From positions 62,001-126,000 of the forward strand of contig RHPI01002998.1 of the NCBI GenBank assembly GCA_009103225.1: a stretch of DNA of 64,000 bases, read 5' to 3'. This DNA is from Chlorokybus atmophyticus (lineage: Eukaryota > Plantae > Mesostigma and Chlorokybus algae). Positions 27,984-42,700 of the stretch are shown one piece after another. The notes beneath the pieces were generated by a model, which saw nothing but the letters and a program-made list of their open reading frames with translations, searched no databases and had not been told where the DNA came from. Within the stretch, counting starts at the first letter, position 1. The number at the start of each line of letters is the position of its first letter. Position numbers and translations under genes: made by a program.

Positions 27984-30527
27984 ATGTCAGCTGGAAGGCT
28001 GTTCGTTAGGATCAGCAATGACAAGATTATTGTCCCTTTTGAGGCTGAGCGCACGGTGGAGGAGCTCGCCAGGGAGGCAAGCGCTCGCTACATGCGCCTG
28101 GTAAAGAGGCGGTCCACGCCTGCGGACCAGTCCAGACTTTCGGAAATAGTAAGTGAGCTGAGCTGTAAGCTGTGAGCTTTACGTACTCACCTGCATGGAC
28201 TGCTGTTTGGCAGAAGTGTTTGTCTTTGTCGTCCTTTGCATGTAAGCTTGCCTGTGTGCGCTGCATGCTCAGTACGCACACAGGGTGCACATTAGGTGGT
28301 CATATTGACAACACAATGCTTACAAACATATTGAGCAGCATGTCTGAGTTGCCCTAAACAGTCGTAATCAAGCAGCATGGAAGTTCTTAGCGCTGTGACA
28401 TTGCTCTGTGCAATGCAAACATCTTCAAAAACCCGTGATGATAGCGGACTTGTATGCAATTGATCGTTTTCAATGTGCCACTCTGCCCCACGTTGGGTGG
28501 CACAAGCCAGCAAGAGTGGAAGTAAGTGCGTGTGCTGAGCAGGAGAATGAGTCCATGATAGTTGAGCTGCGCTCCGGCGGTGCGTCGTTGGATTACGATG
28601 ACATTGTTGGCAGCGTGCTAAGCCCCGGCGAGGAAGTGCAGGCATTTCTGAAGACCGCTCCCGTTGGTGAGGCGTGTTGCGTGAACAAGTCTCTGGTTGC
28701 TGTTGCGCACAATTTGATATTCATTCAACTCGAGCTTGCACATGTCTGCGTGCGTGTGCGTGATGCCTGTGCCATGTGTGCAGAGAATGCGTGGGTGATG
28801 GGTGCTGTGCCGGGGTCAAGTCAGGTCGGTTGGGTGCAGCAGCCAGTAACCAATGAAGTGCAACAGCAGCAGCAAGGAACAAAAAGAAAATACATTGGCA
28901 GCGACAATGTTGGCATGCGCAAACGAGTTCAGGTCAGCATCCACATGCGCTCATCACGCGTGAAGGCCACAACAGTCATCAATGACTGCTGGCTGATAAG
29001 ATTTCAATTCAGAAGAAAACCTTTGAGGAAGCCAAGGCCTTTGCCGAGAGCTTGGGGCTGAAGAGTCAAGCCGATTACATAGAGTGGAGCAATAAAGGCC
29101 TTAGGCCGCCAGACATGCCACGCAACCCGAATAAGTACTACAAAGACAAAGGGTGGACCTCTTGGCGTGACTTTCTTGGTGAGTCACGTCAGTCTGTGGC
29201 CTCAAGCTCTAGCCTATTTTTTTGTGGCCTCAAACACCAGCCCATATCAAGTGAGGCGGCTTGACAATGGTCATACACCAGTTGTGCAACCTATTGTGTA
29301 GGCCATTGTGAAAGAGTCCATCAGGCATTACTAATTGCAGGCACACACGTGCGACCATTTGATGAGGCCAGGGAGTATGTGCGCCGGCTTGGTTTGAAGA
29401 ACCAGACCGAGTACAAGGAGTGGAGCAAAGCTGGCATGAGGCCGGTTGACATACCTGGTTAGTGCAACAGCTGCAGCAGTTGCGCATATTGCTACTTTAC
29501 TTTACTGATGCACTCTGCTTGGTCTGGCAGGCAACCCATACAACTTTTACAGAGACAAGGGTTGGATTAGCTTCCCTGACTTTCTCGGCACGGAGCGCGG
29601 CAAGGCGGGCAAGCAGTGGCGCGTGCCGTTCAAGTCCTATCACGAGGCCAAGAAGTTCATGAAGACGCAGGGTCTGAAGTCCCGTGACGACTTCTTTGAA
29701 TGGTGCAAGAGCGGGATCAGGACCTCGCAAGCGCTCGACATTCCAAGCAACCCACCCAAAGCCTATCAAGACCGCGGGTATATCTAGCCCCCTTGATTGA
29801 CTCAGTATACACGAACCACCTTTCTTTCTTGCAGAAAGCAACGTTGTTGCAGTCTTTGGTTTGACCTCTCAAATGGGTTACTCCCTGCAGGTGGGTGTCG
29901 TGGGATGACTTCCTTAGTGTCAATGAACAGCCAGCAAGTGCTGTGCCTGTCGGCGTTGCAATTGGCGTTCTTCCTGTGAGTTGAACAGCCTTCACGTAAA
30001 GAACTGACTTACATAGGGTGTTGTTGAACACTGGGAACTCAATTCTGGCACTGTGCAGGACGAGCATGGCCAGGCAGCAGAGGCTGTGCCTGTCAGCGAC
30101 GTAGAGCAGGAGCTACAATTTGAGTCGATGTCAAACATGGTAGACCACGGGTTACACGGCGACCATGACAAAGTCCCCTCTGGCGCACACGCATTGGGTA
30201 TGTTGCACTGAATGACGGGTCATGCGTGCATGCCATATTTCACTGCAATCCTGTTTATTCCTGTTCACACCGGCTGTGTGTGATTGCTTATGCTCATTTC
30301 TTGCTGTTTGAATAGCTGACCTATCGCAAGGGCACTCTCAAGCTCCGATTCAGCAAGCGCACCCGCACTCTCTCGCGCACCCGCACCCTCATCCTCACCA
30401 CATGCTGCAGTCTCACCCTCTGCAGCCTCACCCGTTGCAGCAGCACCAACTGCAGCAGCACCAGTTACAACAGCACCAGTTGCAGCCTCATCAGCTGCAG
30501 CCTCACCCTCACTCTCTACAGCACTAG
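27984..30527 (+). CDS. Protein with a Par3/HAL-type N-terminal ubiquitin-like domain, three phage-integrase-repeat-like units and a His/Gln/Pro-rich tail
   Basis: MSAGRLFVRISNDKIIVPFEAERTVEELAREASARY..LRSGGASLDYDDIVGSVLSPGEEVQA. Repeats FEEAKAFAESLGLKSQADYIEW..RPPDMPRNPNKYYKDKGWTSWRDFLG, FDEAREYVRRLGLKNQTEYKEW..RPVDIPGNPYNFYRDKGWISFPDFLG, YHEAKKFMKTQGLKSRDDFFEWCK..DIPSNPPKAYQDRGWVSWDDFL. Last exon has LQQHQ/LQPHP repeats ending at TAG 30525. Confidence 0.75.
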
Positions 30528-31996: not shown

Positions 31997-34900
31997 TTAA
32001 AAGTGGCCAATCGGCCACATTGGGCCACCAGGGTTGGTGCTCCACTTGGGTGGGAAAGCGCCTGTGATGACGCGCTGCTGCGCCTCGGGGTCCTCCGCGA
32101 AGTGGTGCTTCATGGTGCCGGGTGATGGGAGCTTCACACCGTTGGCAGCGGTGAACACAGTGGAGTTGTTGGGCACGGCGATGGACTTGTCAAAGACGGG
32201 GTTGACGTCCATGAAGATGCGCAGCTCGCTGAACTTGCCCGTGGTTGGGTCTACCCGGAAGATGTCTCCGCAGGGCAGGACAATGAGGCTACCGTCCAGG
32301 CGCCAGTACCACACGTCCATCTCAACAAACACGGTGTAGCCCGACTCTTTGATGGACTTGACGTCATGGTACACAGCCTTTACACCGCTGAAGAAGGCCT
32401 CTGCAGACCGGAAGATGCCATCCTTGGCAAACTCCACCTGTAATTGTATCAGCTAGTTGGTCATCTTGTGCTTGCATTTGCTCCATGCTCACAGGCACGC
32501 ACACACATGTGGCGTGCATGCATAGGTTCAGTGCAGAGCTACTATTAAGGTGCATTGCACAGCTGCTGACCTCAAAGTTGCCAAACTGGTAGATGGGATT
32601 GTCAGTGAAGAACTCAGTGAAGCCCTTGCTGTCGAAGGACTCACCGCGGGTGAACAGCCTCTTGGCCATGTGAGAGTATGTGCCCTTGGCAACACTCGGG
32701 GTGGCTGTTGAGGCAGCCTTGCCAGAGCCAGCCTGGATTGGCCACATGGGACCACCCGGGTTGACTGACCACTTGGGTGCAAATCCATTCTTGATGCGCT
32801 CCTGTGAACAACCACCGTCACCACAGATGATTGTGCGAGGCCATGCACCTAATGCGGCAGAAGAATGCAACCACCGTCATGAAATGCAAAGCATTTGTTG
32901 CCTATCTTGGCCAACCTGAGCTTCTGGGTATGACGCAAAGTGTGTCTTCATGGTGCCAGGAGATGGCATGCGGGCACCACCAGCGATGGTGAAGACTGAT
33001 GCTGAGTCTGGCACTGGGATGCTTGGGTCGAAGACAGGGTTGACATCCATGAAGATGCGCAGCTCGCTGAACTTGCCAGAAGCAGCTGACAGTACACAAA
33101 CATCAGCTTGATTTGTGAGTTAACGGCCAACAACACAATCAAGCGCTGCAGTGACTTGCAGAGCCATACTCACCATCCACACGGAAGATGTCCATGCAGG
33201 GCAGCGTGATAAGGCTGCCGTCCAGGCGCCAGTACATGACATCCATCTCCACGTAGACGCATTCATCCACCTGGAAGTTCATATGCAGTCAGCATCGCTT
33301 GCACAAGGACAATACAGACGCATAGCTGAAAGACACAACAGACGCACCTGCCACATCTCCTTGATGTCATGATACACGGCCTTGATACTGTCAAAGAAGT
33401 TCTTTCCTGACTTGCCAATGGCGTCCTTATTAAGTGCCACCTCGAAGTTGCCAAACTGCAAGTGCAACACATCAGACCGCAGCATGATAGCACGCAGTAC
33501 CACATTTCACAAACAAGATCAAGCCCAAAGGGGCCCGCACCTGATACACCGGCGTGTCTGTGAAGAAAGTGACAAAACCAATGTGGTCGTGGGCCTCTCC
33601 GCGGGAGAAGAGCACCTTGGCCAGAGTCACGCCCTCCGGCTCAGCCTTGGCTGGTGCTGCGGTATCTCCCATAGCCAAAGCCATGGCAGCGCTCACAGTG
33701 TAATCGTACTTGCCAATTGGCCACTTGGGACCGCCGTCGGTGGTGGACCACTTGGGTGCATAACCCTGCAGCACGCGAAGCTTGCCCTCAGGGTGCTCCG
33801 CAAAGTGGTGCTTCATTGTCTCTGGCGGGGTGAGAGTGGTGCCGGCCGCTGTGCAAGGCACATTCAAGTGAGCAAACTGCTGTTAATACAGCAAATGGAT
33901 TGATGCAACACGACATGGTATTGGTTACGCGCAGATTGCATGTGCATACCCGTCAACACAGATGCGTTGTGGCCAACTGGCAAAGCTGCGTTGAAGACTG
34001 GGTTGCAGTCCATGAAGATGCGCAACTCGGAGAACTTGCCAGTGGCAGGGTCAACGCGGAAAATATCAGCGCAGGGGAGCTGCACCTTCGTGCCATCAAG
34101 GCGCCAGTAAATAACATCCATCTCAACAAAAACAGTGTACCCGTCCTCCCAGATCATCTTGATCTCGTGGTATACAGCCTGTCAAGCAAAGCGAGATTAA
34201 GATGATGGCAATTGTAGTACCACTCTGAAGAAGAATAGCACCAAGCCAACAACAGTTCAACACCATGTTCCAGTATGTCCTGCATTGTGCTACATGCCAG
34301 AGAGAGTTGCTGACCTTAATACCGCTGAAGAAAGCCTCTGCAGACTTGAAAATTGTGTCCTTGCTGAGGGCAACCTCAAAGTTGCCGAACTGGTATACTG
34401 GGGTCTCAGTAAAGAAGGTGATGAAACCAGCAGAGTCAGAGGCCTCGCCGCGAGAGAACAGTCGCTTGACCTGTGAAGCATTGAGAACACCCACTTTAGC
34501 CATGGGCTAATGCATAAGGAAAACATGCACGCCTGTATGTGTATGACAACACACCATGTCGGTGTATGTGCCAGGGAGCACGGCAGGAGTGGGCATAGGG
34601 GGCTCTGCCGGCAGCTCGGGCACAGCTCTGATTTGCCACTTGGGTCCACCCTCCTTGTACGACCACTTCGGTGCAAGACCGTTCTTGATGCGATCCTATC
34701 AAAACAAGACAAATAGAATGGTTAAAGCTGGGTGGGTTGCATGTCTCCAAAGACCTGCCACAAACTTGATCGGTCATCATGCCAGGCAGTACCTGTGCCT
34801 CGGGATGAGTGGCAAAATGGTGCATCATGGTGCCAGGGATAGCCAGCTTCTGGGCACTGGCACCAGTGAACACTGTGGCATTGCTAGGGACTGGGATGCT

Positions 34901-37454
34901 CGGGTCAAACACAGGGTTGACATCCATGAAGATGCGCAGCTCGCTGAACTTATCAGCAGCAGCTGTAAATAACAAACAATTGTCAATCACGCGTGTCTGC
35001 CTATTAGGTAAAGAATTACTGAAAGGGGACTTCAACTGCGTACCATCCACGCGGAAGATGTCAAAGCATGGCAGGGTGACCACTGAGCCGTCCAGCCGCC
35101 AGTATGTGACATCCATCTCCACAAAAACGCAGTCCGCGTGCTCCCACATGCGCTTGATATCGTGGTAAACGGCACTGATGTTGTTGAAGAAGTTCTCTGC
35201 CGACTTGAAGATGGCATCCTTGGATGTTGCAATCTCAAAGTTGCCGAACTGCACAGCACGAGAGTGACCACCACAAGTCAGCTTGTGGCACAGCACGAGA
35301 TCCTGCATCAGCACTGCCACTAGGAAGCAATCATGCACCTGGTACAGAGGAGTGTCGGTGAAGAACGTGATGAACCCGGCAGAGTCGGAGGCCTCACCAC
35401 GAGAAAACAAACGCTTCACCATGTCAGTATTGTACCCGGGCTGACCCTTTGCTGGAGGGGTGTAAGCGCCAGCAATTGCAGCCGCAGCTCCACCATCCTT
35501 GCCGAACCACTGGTCGAAGAACGGCTTGTATACATCCCTGAGGAAGTACAGGTGCTCGTACTTCTTGTAGCAGCCGCCAACATCACCAGTTCTGATCCAG
35601 ACCACATCTCCGAAAGCAGTCATTTCGCTGGTGTTGACGTCAAAGCACACCTGTCAATGCGATCACACTAAGCCCCGCTGCGTGTCTTGCAAGGGTGGCA
35701 GCGCACAACAAACAAGTCCAATGCTCCATACTGTTAATTGTTTTACAACAACTCTACACCCAAATGCTGCATGAATAGAAGTAGGCACCTCAAACGCATG
35801 CAACATGCATGGCAGCATAACGAAATTGGCTGTGGCAACAACAAACTTAACGCACCCAGTCAAAAGACACGTCTTCACCACTGAAGGTGACGCGTGGCCA
35901 TGTCATGCGCACGCGGGGGTTGGCGAGCATTGCCCACCAGCTGGACTCGTAAGTGTTGCCCTTGGTACGGCCATACCAGTAACCCTTGAGGCCCTGAGGG
36001 TCCGGGTTGTTGGTAATGCCTCCCTCAGAGACATCATACAGGGAATCCTTTGTGAAGTACATGAGCTCATCACGATATTCATTGAAGAGCACAGTCAGTC
36101 CACTGTACTCCTCAGTGACGCCATCAATGGTAAACATGCGATTCTTCTTGTCACCATCGCGCAGCGCTTGACAATGAGTGACCCACCAAATCTGCATACA
36201 GCATTGCAATGGGTTATCTGACCGGCAAACGCAGACAACAATGCATGCAGCCAGGAGATGCCCAAGAGCAGTGTAATGCACTTCTCGCGTTTCACAAGTG
36301 GTACCTTGTTCTCCAACTCTACAGCAGCGGGCGAAGAATACCTCTGCCGAATCTGCAAATGCATCACACACATCAGCTGGCAGCCTGCACAGCATGATTG
36401 CAAAAACCCACAGGTCGAAATTCAACAGCTGTACCTGAGCAAGTGTGGCGTTACGATCAGTTCTGCGGTAGATACGAATGCCCATGATACGAAGGGCATC
36501 TTCAATGATTTCCGGAGGAGCCTGGTGACATGCATGTCAATACTTGATGCTGGGTGACAGTGCAGCGAACAACAAATCACAATCAAGTGGTGGTCGGAAG
36601 CCACTGCAAACACGGCTGTCATGGAATTATTACTTATGATTAACGGTGTTACCTTCTCCTCGGATAGAGTGCTGTAGTCAACGGTGAAGTCCTTGGCACC
36701 AAGGTGTGAAGGGACTGTCTTGTTGGTGTTGGCAAAGCACTGTGTGAGGAAACCAAGCTCAACACGACTTAAGTAGGTTTGGGCCAGTCAATGCATGCAT
36801 TGGGCCAGTCAATGCAGACCGCCACATTATCCCAAAAAGATGGAAACCCTCACCTGGCCAAGGTTTAACTTGATCTGAGTGTAGTAGTTTGCGGGAAACT
36901 GCTTCTGCCTTTCAATGAACTCCAGGGCGTTCTGCACTTCGTCTTGCGAGTAAGATGTTGTCTGCACCTGCCAATGTACACACAGTGTCAGCGACAACCA
37001 ATGCATGCCAGATTACAGAGGCATCCAAGTTGGAGTGATGCATGCATGCACGCAGGCATTGACTCAATTGCATTGAAGTGCAAAATAATAATGAGTGAAG
37101 AAATGGGGAGACAGGCACTGAGGTTGGGCATGCAGCGATATCCAAATCACGTAGTCCAAGCAGAATTACATAAGGAGTAGAGGGGTTGCATGTCACCGCT
37201 GGCAATGCACCTACCGGGGCAGTAGCGGTGGCCACGGCCTGAGCTGTGGTTGAAGCCGGGCGCGATGCTTTGGTCGCACGCGAGGATGTGGTTGCCACGC
37301 GCACAGCAGTGCCGCCAAGAAACGATGCAGACTCGCTGGCGCCTGGCAGTTTGCGAGCTGGCCTGGTGGCCACGGGCAAGTCTGTGCGAGCAGCGGCGCC
37401 CCGCTGCTCAGCCACAACAGCGGAAGCTGTGGCTGTAATCGTAGACCGAGCCAT
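31997..37454 (-). CDS. Plastid-targeted polyprotein of about 1000 aa: one N-terminal NTF2/SnoaL-like module plus four tandem SnoaL-like repeats
   Basis: Transit-peptide-like exon MARSTITATASAVVAEQR.. Then QFPANYYTQIKLNLGQ..IWWVTHCQAL..NEYRDELMYF..WWAMLANPRVRMTWP..RTGDVGGCYKKYEHLYFLRDVY. Then four copies of KRLFSRGE..D..GF..FFTDTP.YQFGNFE..AVYH.IK..VFVEMDV.YWRLDGS...LPC.DIFRV...KFSELRIFMDVNPVF..TM.HHF..PKWS..GGP.W; TAA at 31997. A non-coding 5' exon lies near 38025-38200. Confidence 0.85.
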
Positions 37455-39716
37455 GGTGGTCTGCAAAAATGTACGATCCCTTGAACTGCAGTACTATGCA
37501 AATGCGATGCACTCAGTTGCAACTGGCCATGCAACAAGCAGGGTGACCCGACTCAACACAACCATACAAGACTATAGCACAAGCCACCGTTCAGATGACT
37601 GCGGCTGCAGGCTCACCCTTTACACTGACATCTCAAGGAAATGAACACTAGCTGCAGAGCAGAGTGTGGCAGCAAGACAGGTAAGCAGCAAGCAGCAACA
37701 AAGGCCATAGCTGAGATGCAACCGCGCAGAACTGAGCGCAGCGGGGCCAAAACACAACGCACCGACATAGGATACCACGATCTTGCGGCACACAACTATC
37801 CATACAATGCTACGGCGACAGCATGCACGTCACAATGCAAAAGGTAAGGCGAGGTCGGTTGACGTGAATGCGAGCAATACACACTTAAGCACACAACAAA
37901 CCATCTTGCAGAAGCAACTGCTGAGCGCTCAAAACGACAGAAGAGCACAGATAACGTAGATAGCTTAGCACTACTCAGCACAACTCCGGCAAGCAGGCAG
38001 CAGCTGCCTGTAGCAGCAACGTACCTGCATGGTGGCTAGCGCTGCGGTTGCGACAATGCAAGCAGCGGCACGTCGCTCAGGGTATCCTTCCCCCCTTCAA
38101 TCGCAGCGAGCGCAACAGCTGCCGCCACTTCCGACGCCGCCGTCGTCGCCACCACCACCGCTGGCGTCGTGCTCTCGGCCTGCTTGGGGATAGGTGCTAC
38201 GCAGCTAAACTAGGCGTACCCTTGACTACGTAACTAACCGCATATTGCGCTGACCGCTAACGTACCTGGCTGCTGCACGTTATGGCAGGTAAGTAACCTC
38301 TGCGATGCCATGGGGTGTCCCTTACGTTATGGTTTTATTCTCTGTTTGACTTGTCGGTTACCGCGGACTAGGAATCGACTGTTACGTCGCTCAGGCTCGC
38401 AGCAGGCCGCTTGGGGTGAGGTTGTCGAATCTGAAGCGTAATCAGGCTTACAGCGATGGGCCGGCACTGCCGCGGCGGCATGCTGCGAGATTACATCACT
38501 GGAGGCTGTGAGTGACGTAACATAGGTCAGTCTGGCGTATTCGTAACCAACTTGCCGCGCAGCAAGAGCGTAACCAGTGCAGACCGGTCAATCTGGCTAG
38601 CAGCCGGTTGCTGACCAGCGTCTGTAGCCTCTACCGGTCTCAGGTGATGACGATTGTGCCATGCATGGGTCGTTTCGCAACTCGTGCCTTGTGCAACTGA
38701 AGTTGCTAGTGGAAAAGTATTGGGTACAAGCCGACAAGCGCAGTGCGAAGGTTAAAAAGTTGCGTGTTGTGCTGGACAACTTGTGCACTGGAAGAGTTGC
38801 CCACAGGCATAATCATAATCAGCTGTAAATACAACTTTACAGGTATATTGACGGTAATACCAAGAATGCTTGTCATACTTGTTCAGTTGACAACATATCA
38901 ATTCACAAAGATCATCTGATGATCATATAAAGTCTATGACAAGCAATACCATACTTTATGTTTTTCGATTAATGAATTCAGTGATTTACGCCATGAATGC
39001 GGTGTACATGTACCACACAACACTTGTTACCGTGGTTATCCAAGACAATCCTCATACGAAATCCTAGGCCTTTGAGACACAAATAGGGCGGCTGTCACAG
39101 TTAAATACGGTATTTAAACATTGTATTCTATCTATTTAAGCACACATAATAAAGTACTATATGTATAACATGCTCATGCTTTTGTATAACATTCATAGTG
39201 TGCTTATTCATATTAATATTAGAACACATGGAAGGCCGGCATATACACTATCATGTTAGCTTGTGATTATAAGTAAACGTGTACAATATCACCCATATAA
39301 CATTATATTACATACACAATTCAAGTGTACATACATTAACAATATGGTATACAATGTAAATATCGTGTTGTAAGCTATCTCACTTGTAACAATTCAAATT
39401 GATAGTAACAGTTGAGAAGGTTAACATGGTACTCTCTCTTTATATATGAAGTATACAGCTTTCTCCTTGCGTAGCCGCTAGCAATAATAATATATCACAG
39501 TTTTCGGAATGCAGTAGAAGATAACTTCACTTATTCGTGTACATACATGCATGGTTGCATTGCCTATATGAATGCCAGCATGATGCATGGCAAATATGAT
39601 GTCAGACATCATCATGAGCCTTACTTGATGGTGCATTAGCATCAAGACTCTTCCAATAGTCTTGGTACAAGGCTAACATGTGACACAGCATTGACTATTA
39701 ACGTCGCAAAAATGAT

Positions 39717-42700
39717 GTGGCTCAGTCGACGTTCGATGAACAAGCAGTCTCGATCAGCGTTAATTATGTGGCTTTTTTAAGAGTTGATACTCGCATTGTG
39801 AGAAGGATTATCAAGCTCAGCAATGTGCGTACGAAAGGTCTTTTTTTCTTTGCACGGGTGTGCACAAGTTACTTCTTGCCTGTCTTTACTGGACGCAAGT
39901 CATTGTTCAGTCAAGTGACACATCGCCTCCTTCCCAAAGCAAATTGTTGTTATTGTGCACTGCCTTATGACAGTCACACAAGCAACATTAACGTGATGCT
40001 CAAGCGTTGCCGCACTGTTGCCTCAAGGGTTGCTGCAATGCACCGAGCACTTGTACACGATTGGCGATGCCGGGTTGGGCAAAACCACAACCTTTATTCA
40101 TTCACCAGTCAATGAGTGCGTGCGTTGAGTTTTCAAAACTGATGCGAAGCTTTCAACGCCAGCCAAAACTGCTCTTCACATACGGATGAGCATGCGAGCA
40201 TTGCAAATAACTTGGGCGTGGCTCTGAGCCATGAGACATTGGAAACAAGCAAAGGTGGGGTGTGGTATTGATCAGGCAAAAAGGGCTTCATTATGCGGCA
40301 ATGCGTCGGCTAGAGAATTTGCAACTCTATTGTGCTCTTGCAGGTGTACATTGGGTGAAGGAAGCATCATCTGCAGCATGTCATAAAAACAAGCATCTCT
40401 TTCTTCACTAGTGCAGCTGCACTTGTTTCCTGCTCGCCATCTGATACTACCCGAGTGCAACCCAATCGCTGACATCTCTTGTTATTTCTTGCAGCACGCA
40501 ACCGAAGCAACAGGCCCAGCACGTTAGAGCAATCATATCAATAGCTGAATAGCATGCAATCATAGGTAGCATCTATTACCAGCAAGGCTGCAAGCTTGCT
40601 AATTGATTGGCTACAAGCTCCCAAGTTGAAGGCGCTGCATCAGTTGACGGTTGTATTGGAGCCTACATGCTTTCGCAAAGCAAGTGATTCAGCTGGGTTC
40701 AACATGTGTTGAGAAATGCGGACACACCTAAAAGCTGCCCAAGCAACTTGCTGAAGCAACCAACACCGGTGCTTGTCAATCATTGCAGCTGCGATTGCTT
40801 GGAAATTGTGCGTGACACTTGTTCCATGTCGGAGTTACAGCACTTGCCAATGGAACCTACGAAAACTGTCTGTCTTACATAGCCGAATGCCACCAGATAA
40901 TTGAGCAATGGCAACAAGTTGGCCGTGAAAATGATGGTGTCAAGAAATTGCGCAGTGATGTGTTTTTGCTGGTACATGTGTTTAGCAAATTTACTTTGTG
41001 CATATGTATAACTATGCTTAAACTGTTTATTTGCAACGTCGCACTGCTGAGTCTATGCAAGCTTTACAACAAGCTGACGTCATGGTTGAAAACGCCCTCA
41101 GTGGTGATCAAGACCTTGATGTTGACATGCTGCGGCATGCTATTGACAAGTACAAAAAGGCTTTGCTGCTTACGCGCGAGCACGATGTAGAGAACGAAGC
41201 CATCGCATTGAGCAAGTAAATTATGCTGCAGCAATGCGGCGTTGCTGTGTGCATTATTGAGTGGAATGCTAAGCAATTTACGCCTTACATAGGTTGGGCA
41301 GAGTGTATATGAAGGTTGTGAAGCTGGAGAAGCGCGGCAACAAGTACTGCATGCAAGCCATTTAGCTGGCGCATAAGCAGCAGGCGCGCAATTGGTTCGG
41401 GCAAAAATGGTGTGTGGAGTGCACTGAGCTCACCAAAAAGGTACGAGCTGCAGCTGCTTTATGCTTGGCCAGGATCATTATGTAAAATAGCCAGCGTACT
41501 GTTTCAATGTAGCACATCGCATGTTGCTGCAGTATCGACAGCGCAAGCTTGCACGCGAAGCCAAGGAGCAGGCCAAGCAGCTCGCGCCCATCCTCAAAGA
41601 GTTGAAAGCTGTTCTTGACATCATATGGGTAAGTTGTCTCATAAATATATGCACGGCTTCTACATTAATGCAGGCACACAGTCGTGCATTTCTTGACTGG
41701 TAAAGGGTCAGCTGATTGGAGCACAGAGTGTTTCAACATCACCTTGTTGGGGCAGGCAAAGTCTCAAGAGTCTGGCATTGCTCCTCTGCAGCACATATAC
41801 CATGTCTGTATTGGATCAAGCGCGATGTGCAGTATTGTTCAGTGCCATGCATGATTTGCATTGCAAAGGCCATGCTTGAGTGTGCATATGCTTGTGCACA
41901 TGCGCGCGAATGTCTGCATGTTGTATACGCGTGTGTTGTGCTCGTGCTGATTGTGACACTCAGGTGTCACGCCTATAAGGCTGGTAAAAGTCATTCTCCG
42001 TACAAGAGCGACGGTCAAGTGCAACCTCCTCCTCCTCCAGTTGAGGTTGAGGGTGATCTCGACTATAAAGTCGAGGCCATCGTCGGTAAACGGTTTAGAA
42101 AGTATAAGAAAAACTTTCGAATCCAATACTTGGTAAAGTGGCTTAGTTATGGTGAAGAACATAACACCTGGGAGCCCATTTCCAACTTGGCAAACTGTGC
42201 TACCAAGCTAGACGAGTTTGAGAATAAGCTCAAATACACAGGCGCCACTTGAGCTTGTGCTCAGAGCATGTGTTCAGTTGCAAAAGCGTGGATGCACGTG
42301 CAACCTCCCTTCATGTGACATACCAACACCGTCAACACTGATACTTAGTATCAGAGTTGGTTCTGTCACTCCCGTGACTTGCACTACTTTCACGCGTCGA
42401 GTGCTGCTATCGACGGCTTTGGCCAACTGTGCCAGAAGCTGTGCGGGACTTGTGTTTCATCATTTTGCAACGAGGTCGTTGCAATGCAAGTGGGGAGGAA
42501 TGTCACGCATATAAGGCTGGCAAAAGTCAATCTATGTCCCTTACTTATGTAGTAAGAGGAGACTAAGTGGATTTTCCATTCCATAAGCATGTATAGTGCT
42601 TGTGGGGTGCGCTTATGTAGGTCTACTCTTGAGCCTATATGGCCCTGAGTGTGATGAACTACACAAGGCATTGGTGAGGGCTAGCATTGAGCTGGTCAGT

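Follow-up and report, generated by a model that had tools for sequence, protein, structure and literature searches.

The closest precedent for the gene described here, by analogy and in architecture only, is the iota carbonic anhydrase (iota-CA). This class includes diatom LCIP63 / COG4875 and the COG4337 proteins of Anabaena and Bigelowiella; its domain is an NTF2-like cone, single in most prokaryotes and arranged as two to five plastid-targeted tandem repeats in algae, and its defining features are an (H)HHSS / His-x-Ser motif and a catalytic Thr and Tyr (PMC6776030, PMC8132391). The limonene epoxide hydrolases (LEHs; PDB 1NWW, 5AIF; related SdnG, SalBIII, MonB and Lsd19) share the cone-shaped alpha+beta NTF2-like core of the repeat that we describe. 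Tandem units behind one plastid-targeting leader, encoded by a nuclear gene, are likewise found in the plastid polyproteins of Euglena and dinoflagellates (LHC, RuBisCO small subunit). We analysed a stretch of 64,000 nucleotides from the freshwater streptophyte alga Chlorokybus atmophyticus (contig RHPI01002998.1, positions 62,001 to 126,000; hereafter “the window”) that holds a gene for a single chain with a leader, an N-terminal module (the N-module) and four SnoaL/NTF2-like repeats (R1 to R4). Like the iota-CAs, the repeat family has an NTF2-like cone domain of about 160-190 residues, repeats that appear to have been duplicated before the species diverged, and a link to inorganic carbon; it is found as a standalone protein of about 185 residues in bacteria and as a leader plus four (Chlorokybus) or six (Mesostigma) repeats in algae. 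Unlike the iota-CAs, it also has two-repeat forms and many fusions to enzyme domains in cyanobacteria, and the algal protein adds a second, unrelated NTF2-like module. We hold the statements on the gene, its architecture and its origin, taken together, with high confidence. The best overall explanation, which we regard as rather probable, is that two functionally linked cyanobacterial partners were fused, that the second was multiplied, and that they act in one chain.

The gene lies on the minus strand, where 18 exons run from 37454 to 31997 in one continuous reading frame and all 17 of the introns that separate them are GT..AG. Counting a 6-nt start on an upstream exon at 38030-38025, the product has 1163 residues and is identical to the 1163-residue public Chlorokybus atmophyticus protein P0073 (jgi/Chlat1/3675, Chrsp24S03849), in which the translations of all exons are found in order and without gaps. 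This match identifies the window as Chlorokybus nuclear DNA and the gene as a nuclear gene already predicted in public annotation. Our literature search found no publication on this protein or its family. Spliced RNA contigs from four runs in two studies matched 14 of the 17 introns as well as the 5' exon, and the contig joints agreed with the introns to the base once the stated ambiguity was allowed for. One of these runs, X3, is from a related strain that is 95-99% similar and has identical joints. Among the 34 listed differences of that strain, 28 are synonymous and 6 non-synonymous, with two of the latter in the leader, and these proportions indicate purifying selection. The gene is real, expressed and under purifying selection.

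An earlier reading of the DNA, made from the letters alone (the sequence-only reading), had described one spliced frame that joins a transit-peptide-like leader, a distinct NTF2-like module and four conserved repeats with Ala/Pro linkers; the exact match to P0073 bears out the frame, and the parts are much as described. The leader, residues 1-84, is mostly encoded by the second exon (37215..37460) and consists of 26% Ala, 18% Thr, 11% Ser and 10% Arg, with 3% acidic residues and a net charge of +7. Bacterial homologues start directly at the domain, without this 84-residue extension, and similar leaders are carried by the algal paralogues and orthologues P0064, P0065, P0072 and P0158. Judged by composition, the leader is most likely an organelle-import peptide, and a stromal chloroplast transit peptide is the likeliest kind, as no hydrophobic stretch of the lumen-signal type was found behind it. 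The N-module follows at residues 85-366 (35477..36967) and is encoded by exons 36967-36854, 36739-36653, 36521-36435, 36352-36305 and 36191-35856 and the first part of 35650-35339. The repeats were delimited by hmmsearch. R1 (residues 375-561, 34624..35452; domain score 332 bits, Pfam SnoaL_2) and R3 (residues 779-964, 32730..33651) were assigned by trees to type A, and R2 (residues 574-759, 33709..34587) and R4 (residues 975-1163, 32000..32699, with an AlphaFold model) to type B. The stop codon is at 31999-31997, and all of these features are on the minus strand.

The linkers between these units are 12-20 residues long and rich in Ala, Pro, Gly and Thr, differ in length and sequence, and have no motif common to the four. 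The sequence-only reading had called the product a polyprotein. Given such linkers, cleavage into units finds no support, and we reject the cleaved-polyprotein reading. The Euglena and dinoflagellate polyproteins differ in both respects, with near-identical units that are cut at conserved linker peptides, whereas the Chlorokybus units are 61-69% identical and their linkers motif-free. Intron positions had also been said to differ between repeats. This stands for R2 and R4, which each have positions of their own and none in common, but not for R1 and R3, which have three in common (after ..YQ, after ..FRVD in phase 1, and after ..PEAQ).

The four repeats, of about 186 residues each, are 61-69% identical to one another in protein and 60-81% in DNA. 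Of the 59 positions at which at least 93% of 57 bacterial homologues agree, each repeat retains 57-58. Many of these positions are polar (R18, E20, D23, Y37, Y66, H67, E82, D84, Y87, W88, R89, C99, D101, R104, E114, R116, D120). With 57-58 of 59 positions kept and 28 synonymous against 6 non-synonymous changes, the repeats are not a product of chance, and the conservation suggests that all four Chlorokybus cones are probably functional. The first repeat of the Mesostigma protein P0072 (P0072:91-275) keeps only 42 of the 59 positions, with C99 and D101 among the losses, and may be an inactive copy; it also lies on a long branch.

Database searches placed the repeats within a broad fold class. 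Pfam SnoaL_2 (PF12680) matched P0073 with 77 bits (cut-off 27) and an E value of 1.9e-21, and six stretches of P0072 matched the same model. When single exons were searched against Pfam and NCBIfam, SnoaL_2 was found only below threshold and the N-module gave nothing. A protein-language-model atlas gave no usable result for exon 6, and for R4 the clusters it returned were all generic SnoaL_2 ones. Exon 18 alone retrieved standalone proteins of about 185 residues at 43-62% identity. A search from a long cyanobacterial member found the Mesostigma orthologue P0072, with a leader and six repeats but without the N-module; cyanobacterial proteins of about 737 residues with EthD domains and two tandem repeat copies; and proteins of 800-1400 residues in Nostocales and Pleurocapsales, in which one repeat copy is followed by another SnoaL domain. 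The partner domains in these longest proteins are CMD, EthD, VOC/glyoxalase, DUF1857/AtaL or FAD-oxidase. The same domain, 51-61% identical to R4, is contained in uncharacterised cyanobacterial proteins labelled “nuclear transport factor 2 family”, EthD or “AtaL-like”, for example P0078 (Synechocystis sp. LKSZ1), P0081 (Cyanobacterium sp. IPPAS B-1200) and the Nostocales proteins of 800-1400 residues. Unlike the algal protein, these proteins have no leader and carry EthD, CMD, VOC/glyoxalase, DUF1857/AtaL or FAD-oxidase domains at the N-terminus.

With one genome taken per species, 72 loci carry the repeat domain. Cyanobacteria account for most of them, with best segments that for the greater part are 55-70% identical to R2; the few non-cyanobacterial loci, at 50-58%, belong to Chloroflexota, Acidobacteriota, Pseudomonadota, Armatimonadota and Bacteroidota. 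Compared directly, the algal repeats are 65-73% identical to cyanobacterial domains (up to 73% for R1 against domains in genome loci) and 50-58% identical to those of other phyla. Our searches among eukaryotes covered protein lengths of 80-255 and 562-1788 residues, and within these ranges only Chlorokybus and Mesostigma were found. Cyanobacterial homologues of the repeats therefore exist, and no already characterised eukaryotic family was found to account for them; both results are in line with the sequence-only reading.

To place the repeats, we relied on a maximum-likelihood tree, which is unrooted. The ten algal repeats form one clade (support 100/96), nested in a group (87/80) that comprises 58 rows from cyanobacteria and 3 from other bacteria. 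Within the algal clade, type A (95/76) unites R1 and R3 of Chlorokybus with R1, R3 and R5 of Mesostigma, and type B (98/87) unites R2 and R4 of Chlorokybus with R2, R4 and R6 of Mesostigma. On this tree the repeats alternate A-B-A-B, and the A-B dyad predates the split between Chlorokybus and Mesostigma. Chlorokybus R3 and R4 branch before R1 plus the Mesostigma A repeats and R2 plus the Mesostigma B repeats, respectively, and the doubling of the dyad probably also predates the split, a history that the intron positions shared by R1 and R3 fit. As read from the tree, Mesostigma later re-amplified one dyad, and its copies are 87-98% identical. The cyanobacterial two-repeat proteins (P0074-P0086) were considered as a source of the algal dyad and rejected; they form a clade of their own, and their two tandem copies arose by an independent duplication.

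Because the algal clade lies inside a mostly cyanobacterial group, a cyanobacterial source is the best-supported origin of the repeats, although the nesting is moderately supported (87/80) and comes from an unrooted tree. The gene could be an ancient endosymbiotic transfer from the plastid ancestor that was lost in nearly all other Archaeplastida, the counterpart being a later horizontal transfer from a cyanobacterium to the common ancestor of Chlorokybus and Mesostigma. The cyanobacterial affinity and the plastid-type leader are what an endosymbiotic origin would lead one to expect, and the family evolves slowly (50-60% identity between bacterial phyla), which means that 65-73% identity gives no date for the transfer. 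However, within the length ranges searched only these two algae have the gene among eukaryotes, and the algal clade falls among crown-group, Nostocales-rich sequences rather than outside all cyanobacteria. Even with the caveats that the cyanobacterial gene cluster around the repeat family itself moves between bacterial phyla and that the tree has the limits just given, we consider an endosymbiotic origin unlikely, while giving it appreciable weight.

The N-module has no Pfam or NCBIfam match, and a full HMMER pass over 1.84 billion representative proteins returned 22 relatives. Those of full length are standalone plastid-leader proteins of Chlorokybus and Mesostigma, one protein from the diatom Cyclophora, and sequences from eukaryote-like ENA contigs; shorter relatives, of about 190 residues, are bacterial. 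The structural model (282 residues, from protein residue 85) has a pLDDT of 86. Its residues 100-267, the C-terminal two-thirds of the module, are NTF2-like, with a VIA Z of 9.8 and a root-mean-square deviation (rmsd) of 3.3 over 126 residues; the top matches all have this fold. The earlier description of this part as a distinct NTF2-like module is borne out for these residues. In Mesostigma viride, the gene model Mv12193 (P0158 / P0176) joins a leader and an N-module to an APX-like haem peroxidase (Pfam PF00141, E 3.8e-36), an observation made at the level of the gene model. The N-modules of eukaryotes make up a separate clade, which sits on a long branch; within it, the nearest relative of the fused copy is P0064, a standalone paralogue from Chlorokybus. 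Only in Chlorokybus were the N-module and the repeats seen joined, and Mesostigma has the two in separate models. The closeness to P0064 points to a fusion event confined to Chlorokybus, and the two parts may have been acquired on separate occasions.

Evidence that the two parts belong together comes from the bacterial genomes. In Synechocystis sp. LKSZ1 and Cyanobacterium sp. IPPAS B-1200 (L079, L081), a gene for a Pfam-less protein of 189-191 residues lies directly upstream of the gene for the EthD-two-repeat protein. This 189-residue protein shares 71% identity with P0161, a bacterial relative of the N-module, and 34% with the Chlorokybus N-module over 218 residues (blastp, E 9e-38), and the similarity is detectable on the window DNA itself. 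A tblastn search of the N-module exons against six bacterial loci gave nothing, and those six loci are without the 189-residue gene. By sequence comparison, then, the N-module is distantly related to the product of the gene directly upstream of the repeat-family gene. The adjacency of the two genes, with 34% identity, implies that the algal fusion joins homologues of two genes that are neighbours in bacteria and keeps their order. The 189-residue gene was found within 8 kb of the repeat-family gene at 45 of the 72 loci; at 43 of these the two genes share a strand, and at 35 the 189-residue gene is the upstream one. In Anabaena sphaerica, the 189-residue homologue is the C-terminal part of a 518-residue EthD protein whose gene ends 3 bp before the repeat-family gene. 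That protein is encoded by the first of three consecutive genes (L082:7442-13682); the second encodes a 1054-residue CMD-EthD-VOC-repeat protein, and the product of the third, a 495-residue Nif11-SnoaL protein, contains the repeat domain once more. The proposal that a cyanobacterial gene set had been fused gains from these data, as both modules have separate cyanobacterial relatives encoded by neighbouring genes in a conserved cluster.

Other members of the cluster were counted over the same interval, ±8 kb of the repeat-family gene at the 72 loci. Genes for CMD (CMD/AhpD-like) proteins are present at 42 loci, DJ-1/PfpI at 34, a 606-residue Slr1855-like protein at 33, SDR proteins at 28, STAS at 21, GlgX isoamylase at 19 and OprB porin at 18. 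Next to these are RsbW-like kinases and GAF-SpoIIE phosphatases, and EthD and VOC/glyoxalase domains are also found in the cluster. The gene order (606-residue protein, STAS, isoamylase, STAS, kinase/phosphatase) is that of the icfG operon of Synechocystis 6803, slr1852-1862. This correspondence rests on gene order and Pfam content rather than on a comparison of sequences with 6803, a strain absent from the loci. The icfG operon has been implicated in the coordination of inorganic-carbon and glucose metabolism (10.1101/2021.07.28.454097; PMC12329169). Outside cyanobacteria, parts of the cluster are found as well. For example, four loci of Chloroflexota and Bryobacteraceae (L060, L068, L069, L070) have the repeat-family gene in company with the 189-residue, CMD, DJ-1 and Slr1855-like genes, which are 61-77% identical to their cyanobacterial counterparts. 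The presence of cluster parts in Chloroflexota and Acidobacteriota at this level of identity suggests that the cluster is passed as a whole from one phylum to another. The repeat domain has other surroundings in Sphingomonas, Chthonomonadaceae and Ferruginibacter, where its neighbours are isochorismatase, SDR and an outer-membrane (Alginate_exp) porin; in Sphingomonas and Chthonomonadaceae they also include YceI, DUF6640 and a PQQ dehydrogenase.

The AlphaFold model of R4 has a pLDDT of 96.6. Its residues 1-130 form the NTF2-like cone, and residues 135-189 form a helical extension of about 55 residues that is specific to the family and was matched by no structure in the fold searches. A fold search with R4 returned 158 PDB representatives at Z of at least 8, and the 50 listed are nearly all NTF2-like; with the N-module result above, this agrees with the earlier claim that both module types have this fold. 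The best matches are LEHs (Foldseek E 1.8e-08; VIA Z 14.6, rmsd 1.9 over 121 residues). Identity to LEH is 16-20%, and the repeat differs in its C-terminal extension, with conserved motifs at M152, R165, G169, P173-K-W175 and W184, and in the tandem arrangement of the algal domain. The catalytic residues of LEH are an Asp101-Arg99-Asp132 triad together with Tyr53 and Asn55. In a weak HMMER alignment, Tyr37 of the family is aligned with LEH Tyr53 and Asp84 with LEH Asp101.

From these observations we can outline a mechanism, in conditional terms. The alga would have joined two functionally linked bacterial partners in one chain and multiplied the second. Each repeat would be an independent catalytic, cone-shaped pocket that carries out acid/base chemistry on a small oxygenated (or reactive) metabolite, of the hydrolase/isomerase kind exemplified by LEH. 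A-B pairs would replace the homodimers that are usual for such domains, and the N-module would act on, or deliver, the substrate of the repeats. The role would be one of protection or housekeeping tied to carbon or oxidative stress, a suggestion drawn from the partner domains DJ-1, VOC, CMD, EthD and SDR and from the peroxidase fusion. The fusion says that the N-module and the repeats would work together, and the many conserved polar residues on strands of the sheet suggest acid/base catalysis rather than passive binding.

Several results weigh against parts of this proposal. The lead of LEH among the fold matches is about 1 Z unit, and dozens of NTF2-like enzymes and binders lie within 1-2 Z units. 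A profile of the repeat family searched against the PDB sees LEH only, at a marginal E of 0.02 (LEH chains 0.02-0.9), and no match to Pfam LEH (PF07858) was found at E <= 0.01. In the weak alignment, LEH Arg99 falls in a gap, Asn55 is opposite Phe and Asp132 opposite Ile, which leaves two of the five catalytic residues matched. Membership in the LEH family was rejected on the missing PF07858 match and the marginal profile score. On the side of the N-module, the branch that separates it from the bacterial 189-residue family is very long, so that eukaryotes may have gained the two parts at different times. We put forward an enzyme with LEH-like chemistry as a tentative assignment that falls somewhat short of an even chance.

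Function could also take forms other than LEH-like catalysis. NTF2-like folds include known binders, and the cones might hold a hydrophobic ligand such as a carotenoid, quinone, lipid or oxylipin, with the four-repeat chain acting as a high-capacity stromal carrier or buffer. A homologue of the OCP C-terminal domain and designed steroid and drug binders are among the fold matches, at Z of about 12-13. However, the OCP homologue, Anabaena CTDH 8qx7, ranks only 48th (Z 12.1), within the generic NTF2-like background; there is no sequence signal, and Pfam PF02136, the type of the OCP C-terminal domain, gave no match. We therefore reject an OCP-like mode of carotenoid binding, and the carotenoid/oxylipin idea put forward in the sequence-only reading finds no specific support. 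About 59 near-invariant positions, many of them charged, across at least five bacterial phyla and the algae would be rare for a binder, and the genomic partners are enzymes (SDR, VOC, EthD, CMD, DJ-1). A non-catalytic carrier is on this evidence improbable. Slightly less probable still, as a specific elaboration of the preferred fusion of two linked partners, is that the repeat domain and the 189-residue/N-module protein would constitute a cofactor-free two-component enzyme system of the icfG cluster. The target of such a system might be inorganic carbon itself, or a reactive metabolite, derived from sugar or oxygen, that arises when photosynthesis and carbon supply fall out of balance; an early streptophyte alga would have captured the system, fused and multiplied it, and sent it to the chloroplast.

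The parallel with iota-CAs raises the question of whether the cones could themselves be metal-free CO2-hydrating sites. The fold class is the same, with single domains in most prokaryotes and two to six repeats behind a leader in algae (PMC6776030, PMC8132391), and the cyanobacterial genes adjoin an icfG-type operon implicated in carbon regulation (PMC12329169). Nevertheless, neither module's profile matched any iota-CA PDB chain even at E <= 10, no CaMKII_AD match was found in Pfam, the (H)HHSS / His-x-Ser motif is absent from the repeat family consensus, and no iota-CA structure is among the top 50 fold matches of R4. Membership in the iota-CA class was rejected on sequence (no profile match, no motif), and an iota-type carbonic-anhydrase-like activity is in our view very improbable.

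Weakest of all, and hardly credible, is the view that the gene is an annotation or assembly artefact in which separate neighbouring genes were merged into one model, or a bacterial contaminant, the latter being excluded by eighteen spliceosomal introns. What speaks for a merged model is that no single RNA contig covers the full coding sequence, that the Mesostigma repeats and N-module are in separate models, and that run X1, alone among the runs, has a contig near the N-module/R1 border in which 35572 is joined to 35853, skipping 280 nt with non-canonical ends. The repeats break k-mer assembly, which explains the want of a spanning contig, and the 35572/35853 joint is probably an assembly shortcut; the joint between exons 6 and 7 is not among the joints listed. 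Against merging, the N-module/R1 junction lies inside one exon (35339..35650, of which an RNA contig covers 35339-35570) with an unbroken frame, which makes the fusion independent of splicing, and there is no stop between units. Moreover, contigs link the 5' exon through to exon 6, exon 7 to exon 8, exons 9-16 and exons 16-18, always with GT..AG joints. The RNA contigs thus give no support to several separate transcripts.

Three findings are new here: the A-B-A-B pairing older than the Mesostigma split, the cyanobacterial nesting of the repeats, and the relation of the N-module to the 189-residue protein. Two uncharacterised families, a highly conserved SnoaL_2 subfamily and the Pfam-less N-module family, are linked by three independent ties: adjacency in cyanobacteria, shared EthD fusion partners in cyanobacteria, and the algal fusion in one chain. 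Both families are placed beside the icfG operon, whose regulators are being worked out (PMC12329169) and whose enzyme-like passengers have so far been ignored. After the iota-CAs, this would be the second case in which a prokaryotic single-domain NTF2-like protein became a tandem array in algae, presumably directed to the plastid, and its ordered A-B dyad has persisted from a time before the divergence of Chlorokybus and Mesostigma. Were the two-component system to prove correct, it would amount to a new enzyme class, parallel to the iota-CAs. The problem is tractable: each repeat is a small domain with a high-confidence structural model, its bacterial homologues lend themselves to expression, and mutants of cyanobacteria are feasible.

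The start of the gene lies further upstream than first described. The sequence-only reading had begun the frame at the ATG at 37454, while the annotated start is four codons upstream of it, and P0073 begins MQTTMARS. The first two codons, ATGCAG at 38030-38025, are on a separate 5' exon and are followed by a 564-nt GT..AG intron (37461..38024, minus strand) between codons 2 and 3; the DNA at the 38025/38024 boundary reads CCACCATGCAG|GTACGT. RNA contigs from runs X1, X2 and X3 have loose ends past 37465 that match the window from 38030 on, and these ends, together with the boundary sequence, are the reason for placing there a 5' exon that ends in ATG CAG. Exon 1 (38025..38172, minus strand), defined by RNA contigs with an approximate upstream limit, comprises the 5' untranslated region and these two codons. 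With the start codon on this exon, the gene reaches past the end coordinate of 37454 first given for it. The two in-frame ATGs, four codons apart, each have CCACCATG context.

No other gene of the cyanobacterial cluster was found within the window, and the neighbouring open reading frames within about 8 kb gave no functional link. The only match among them is a chromodomain frame (Pfam PF00385, E 5.6e-18) at 41716-42249 on the plus strand, about 3.5 kb upstream of the first exon. GC content falls to 0.33 at window positions 39000-39500, in surroundings of about 0.52. Downstream of the gene, a tandem array at 30405-30510 has a period of 15/30, with about 7 copies and 74-76% matches.

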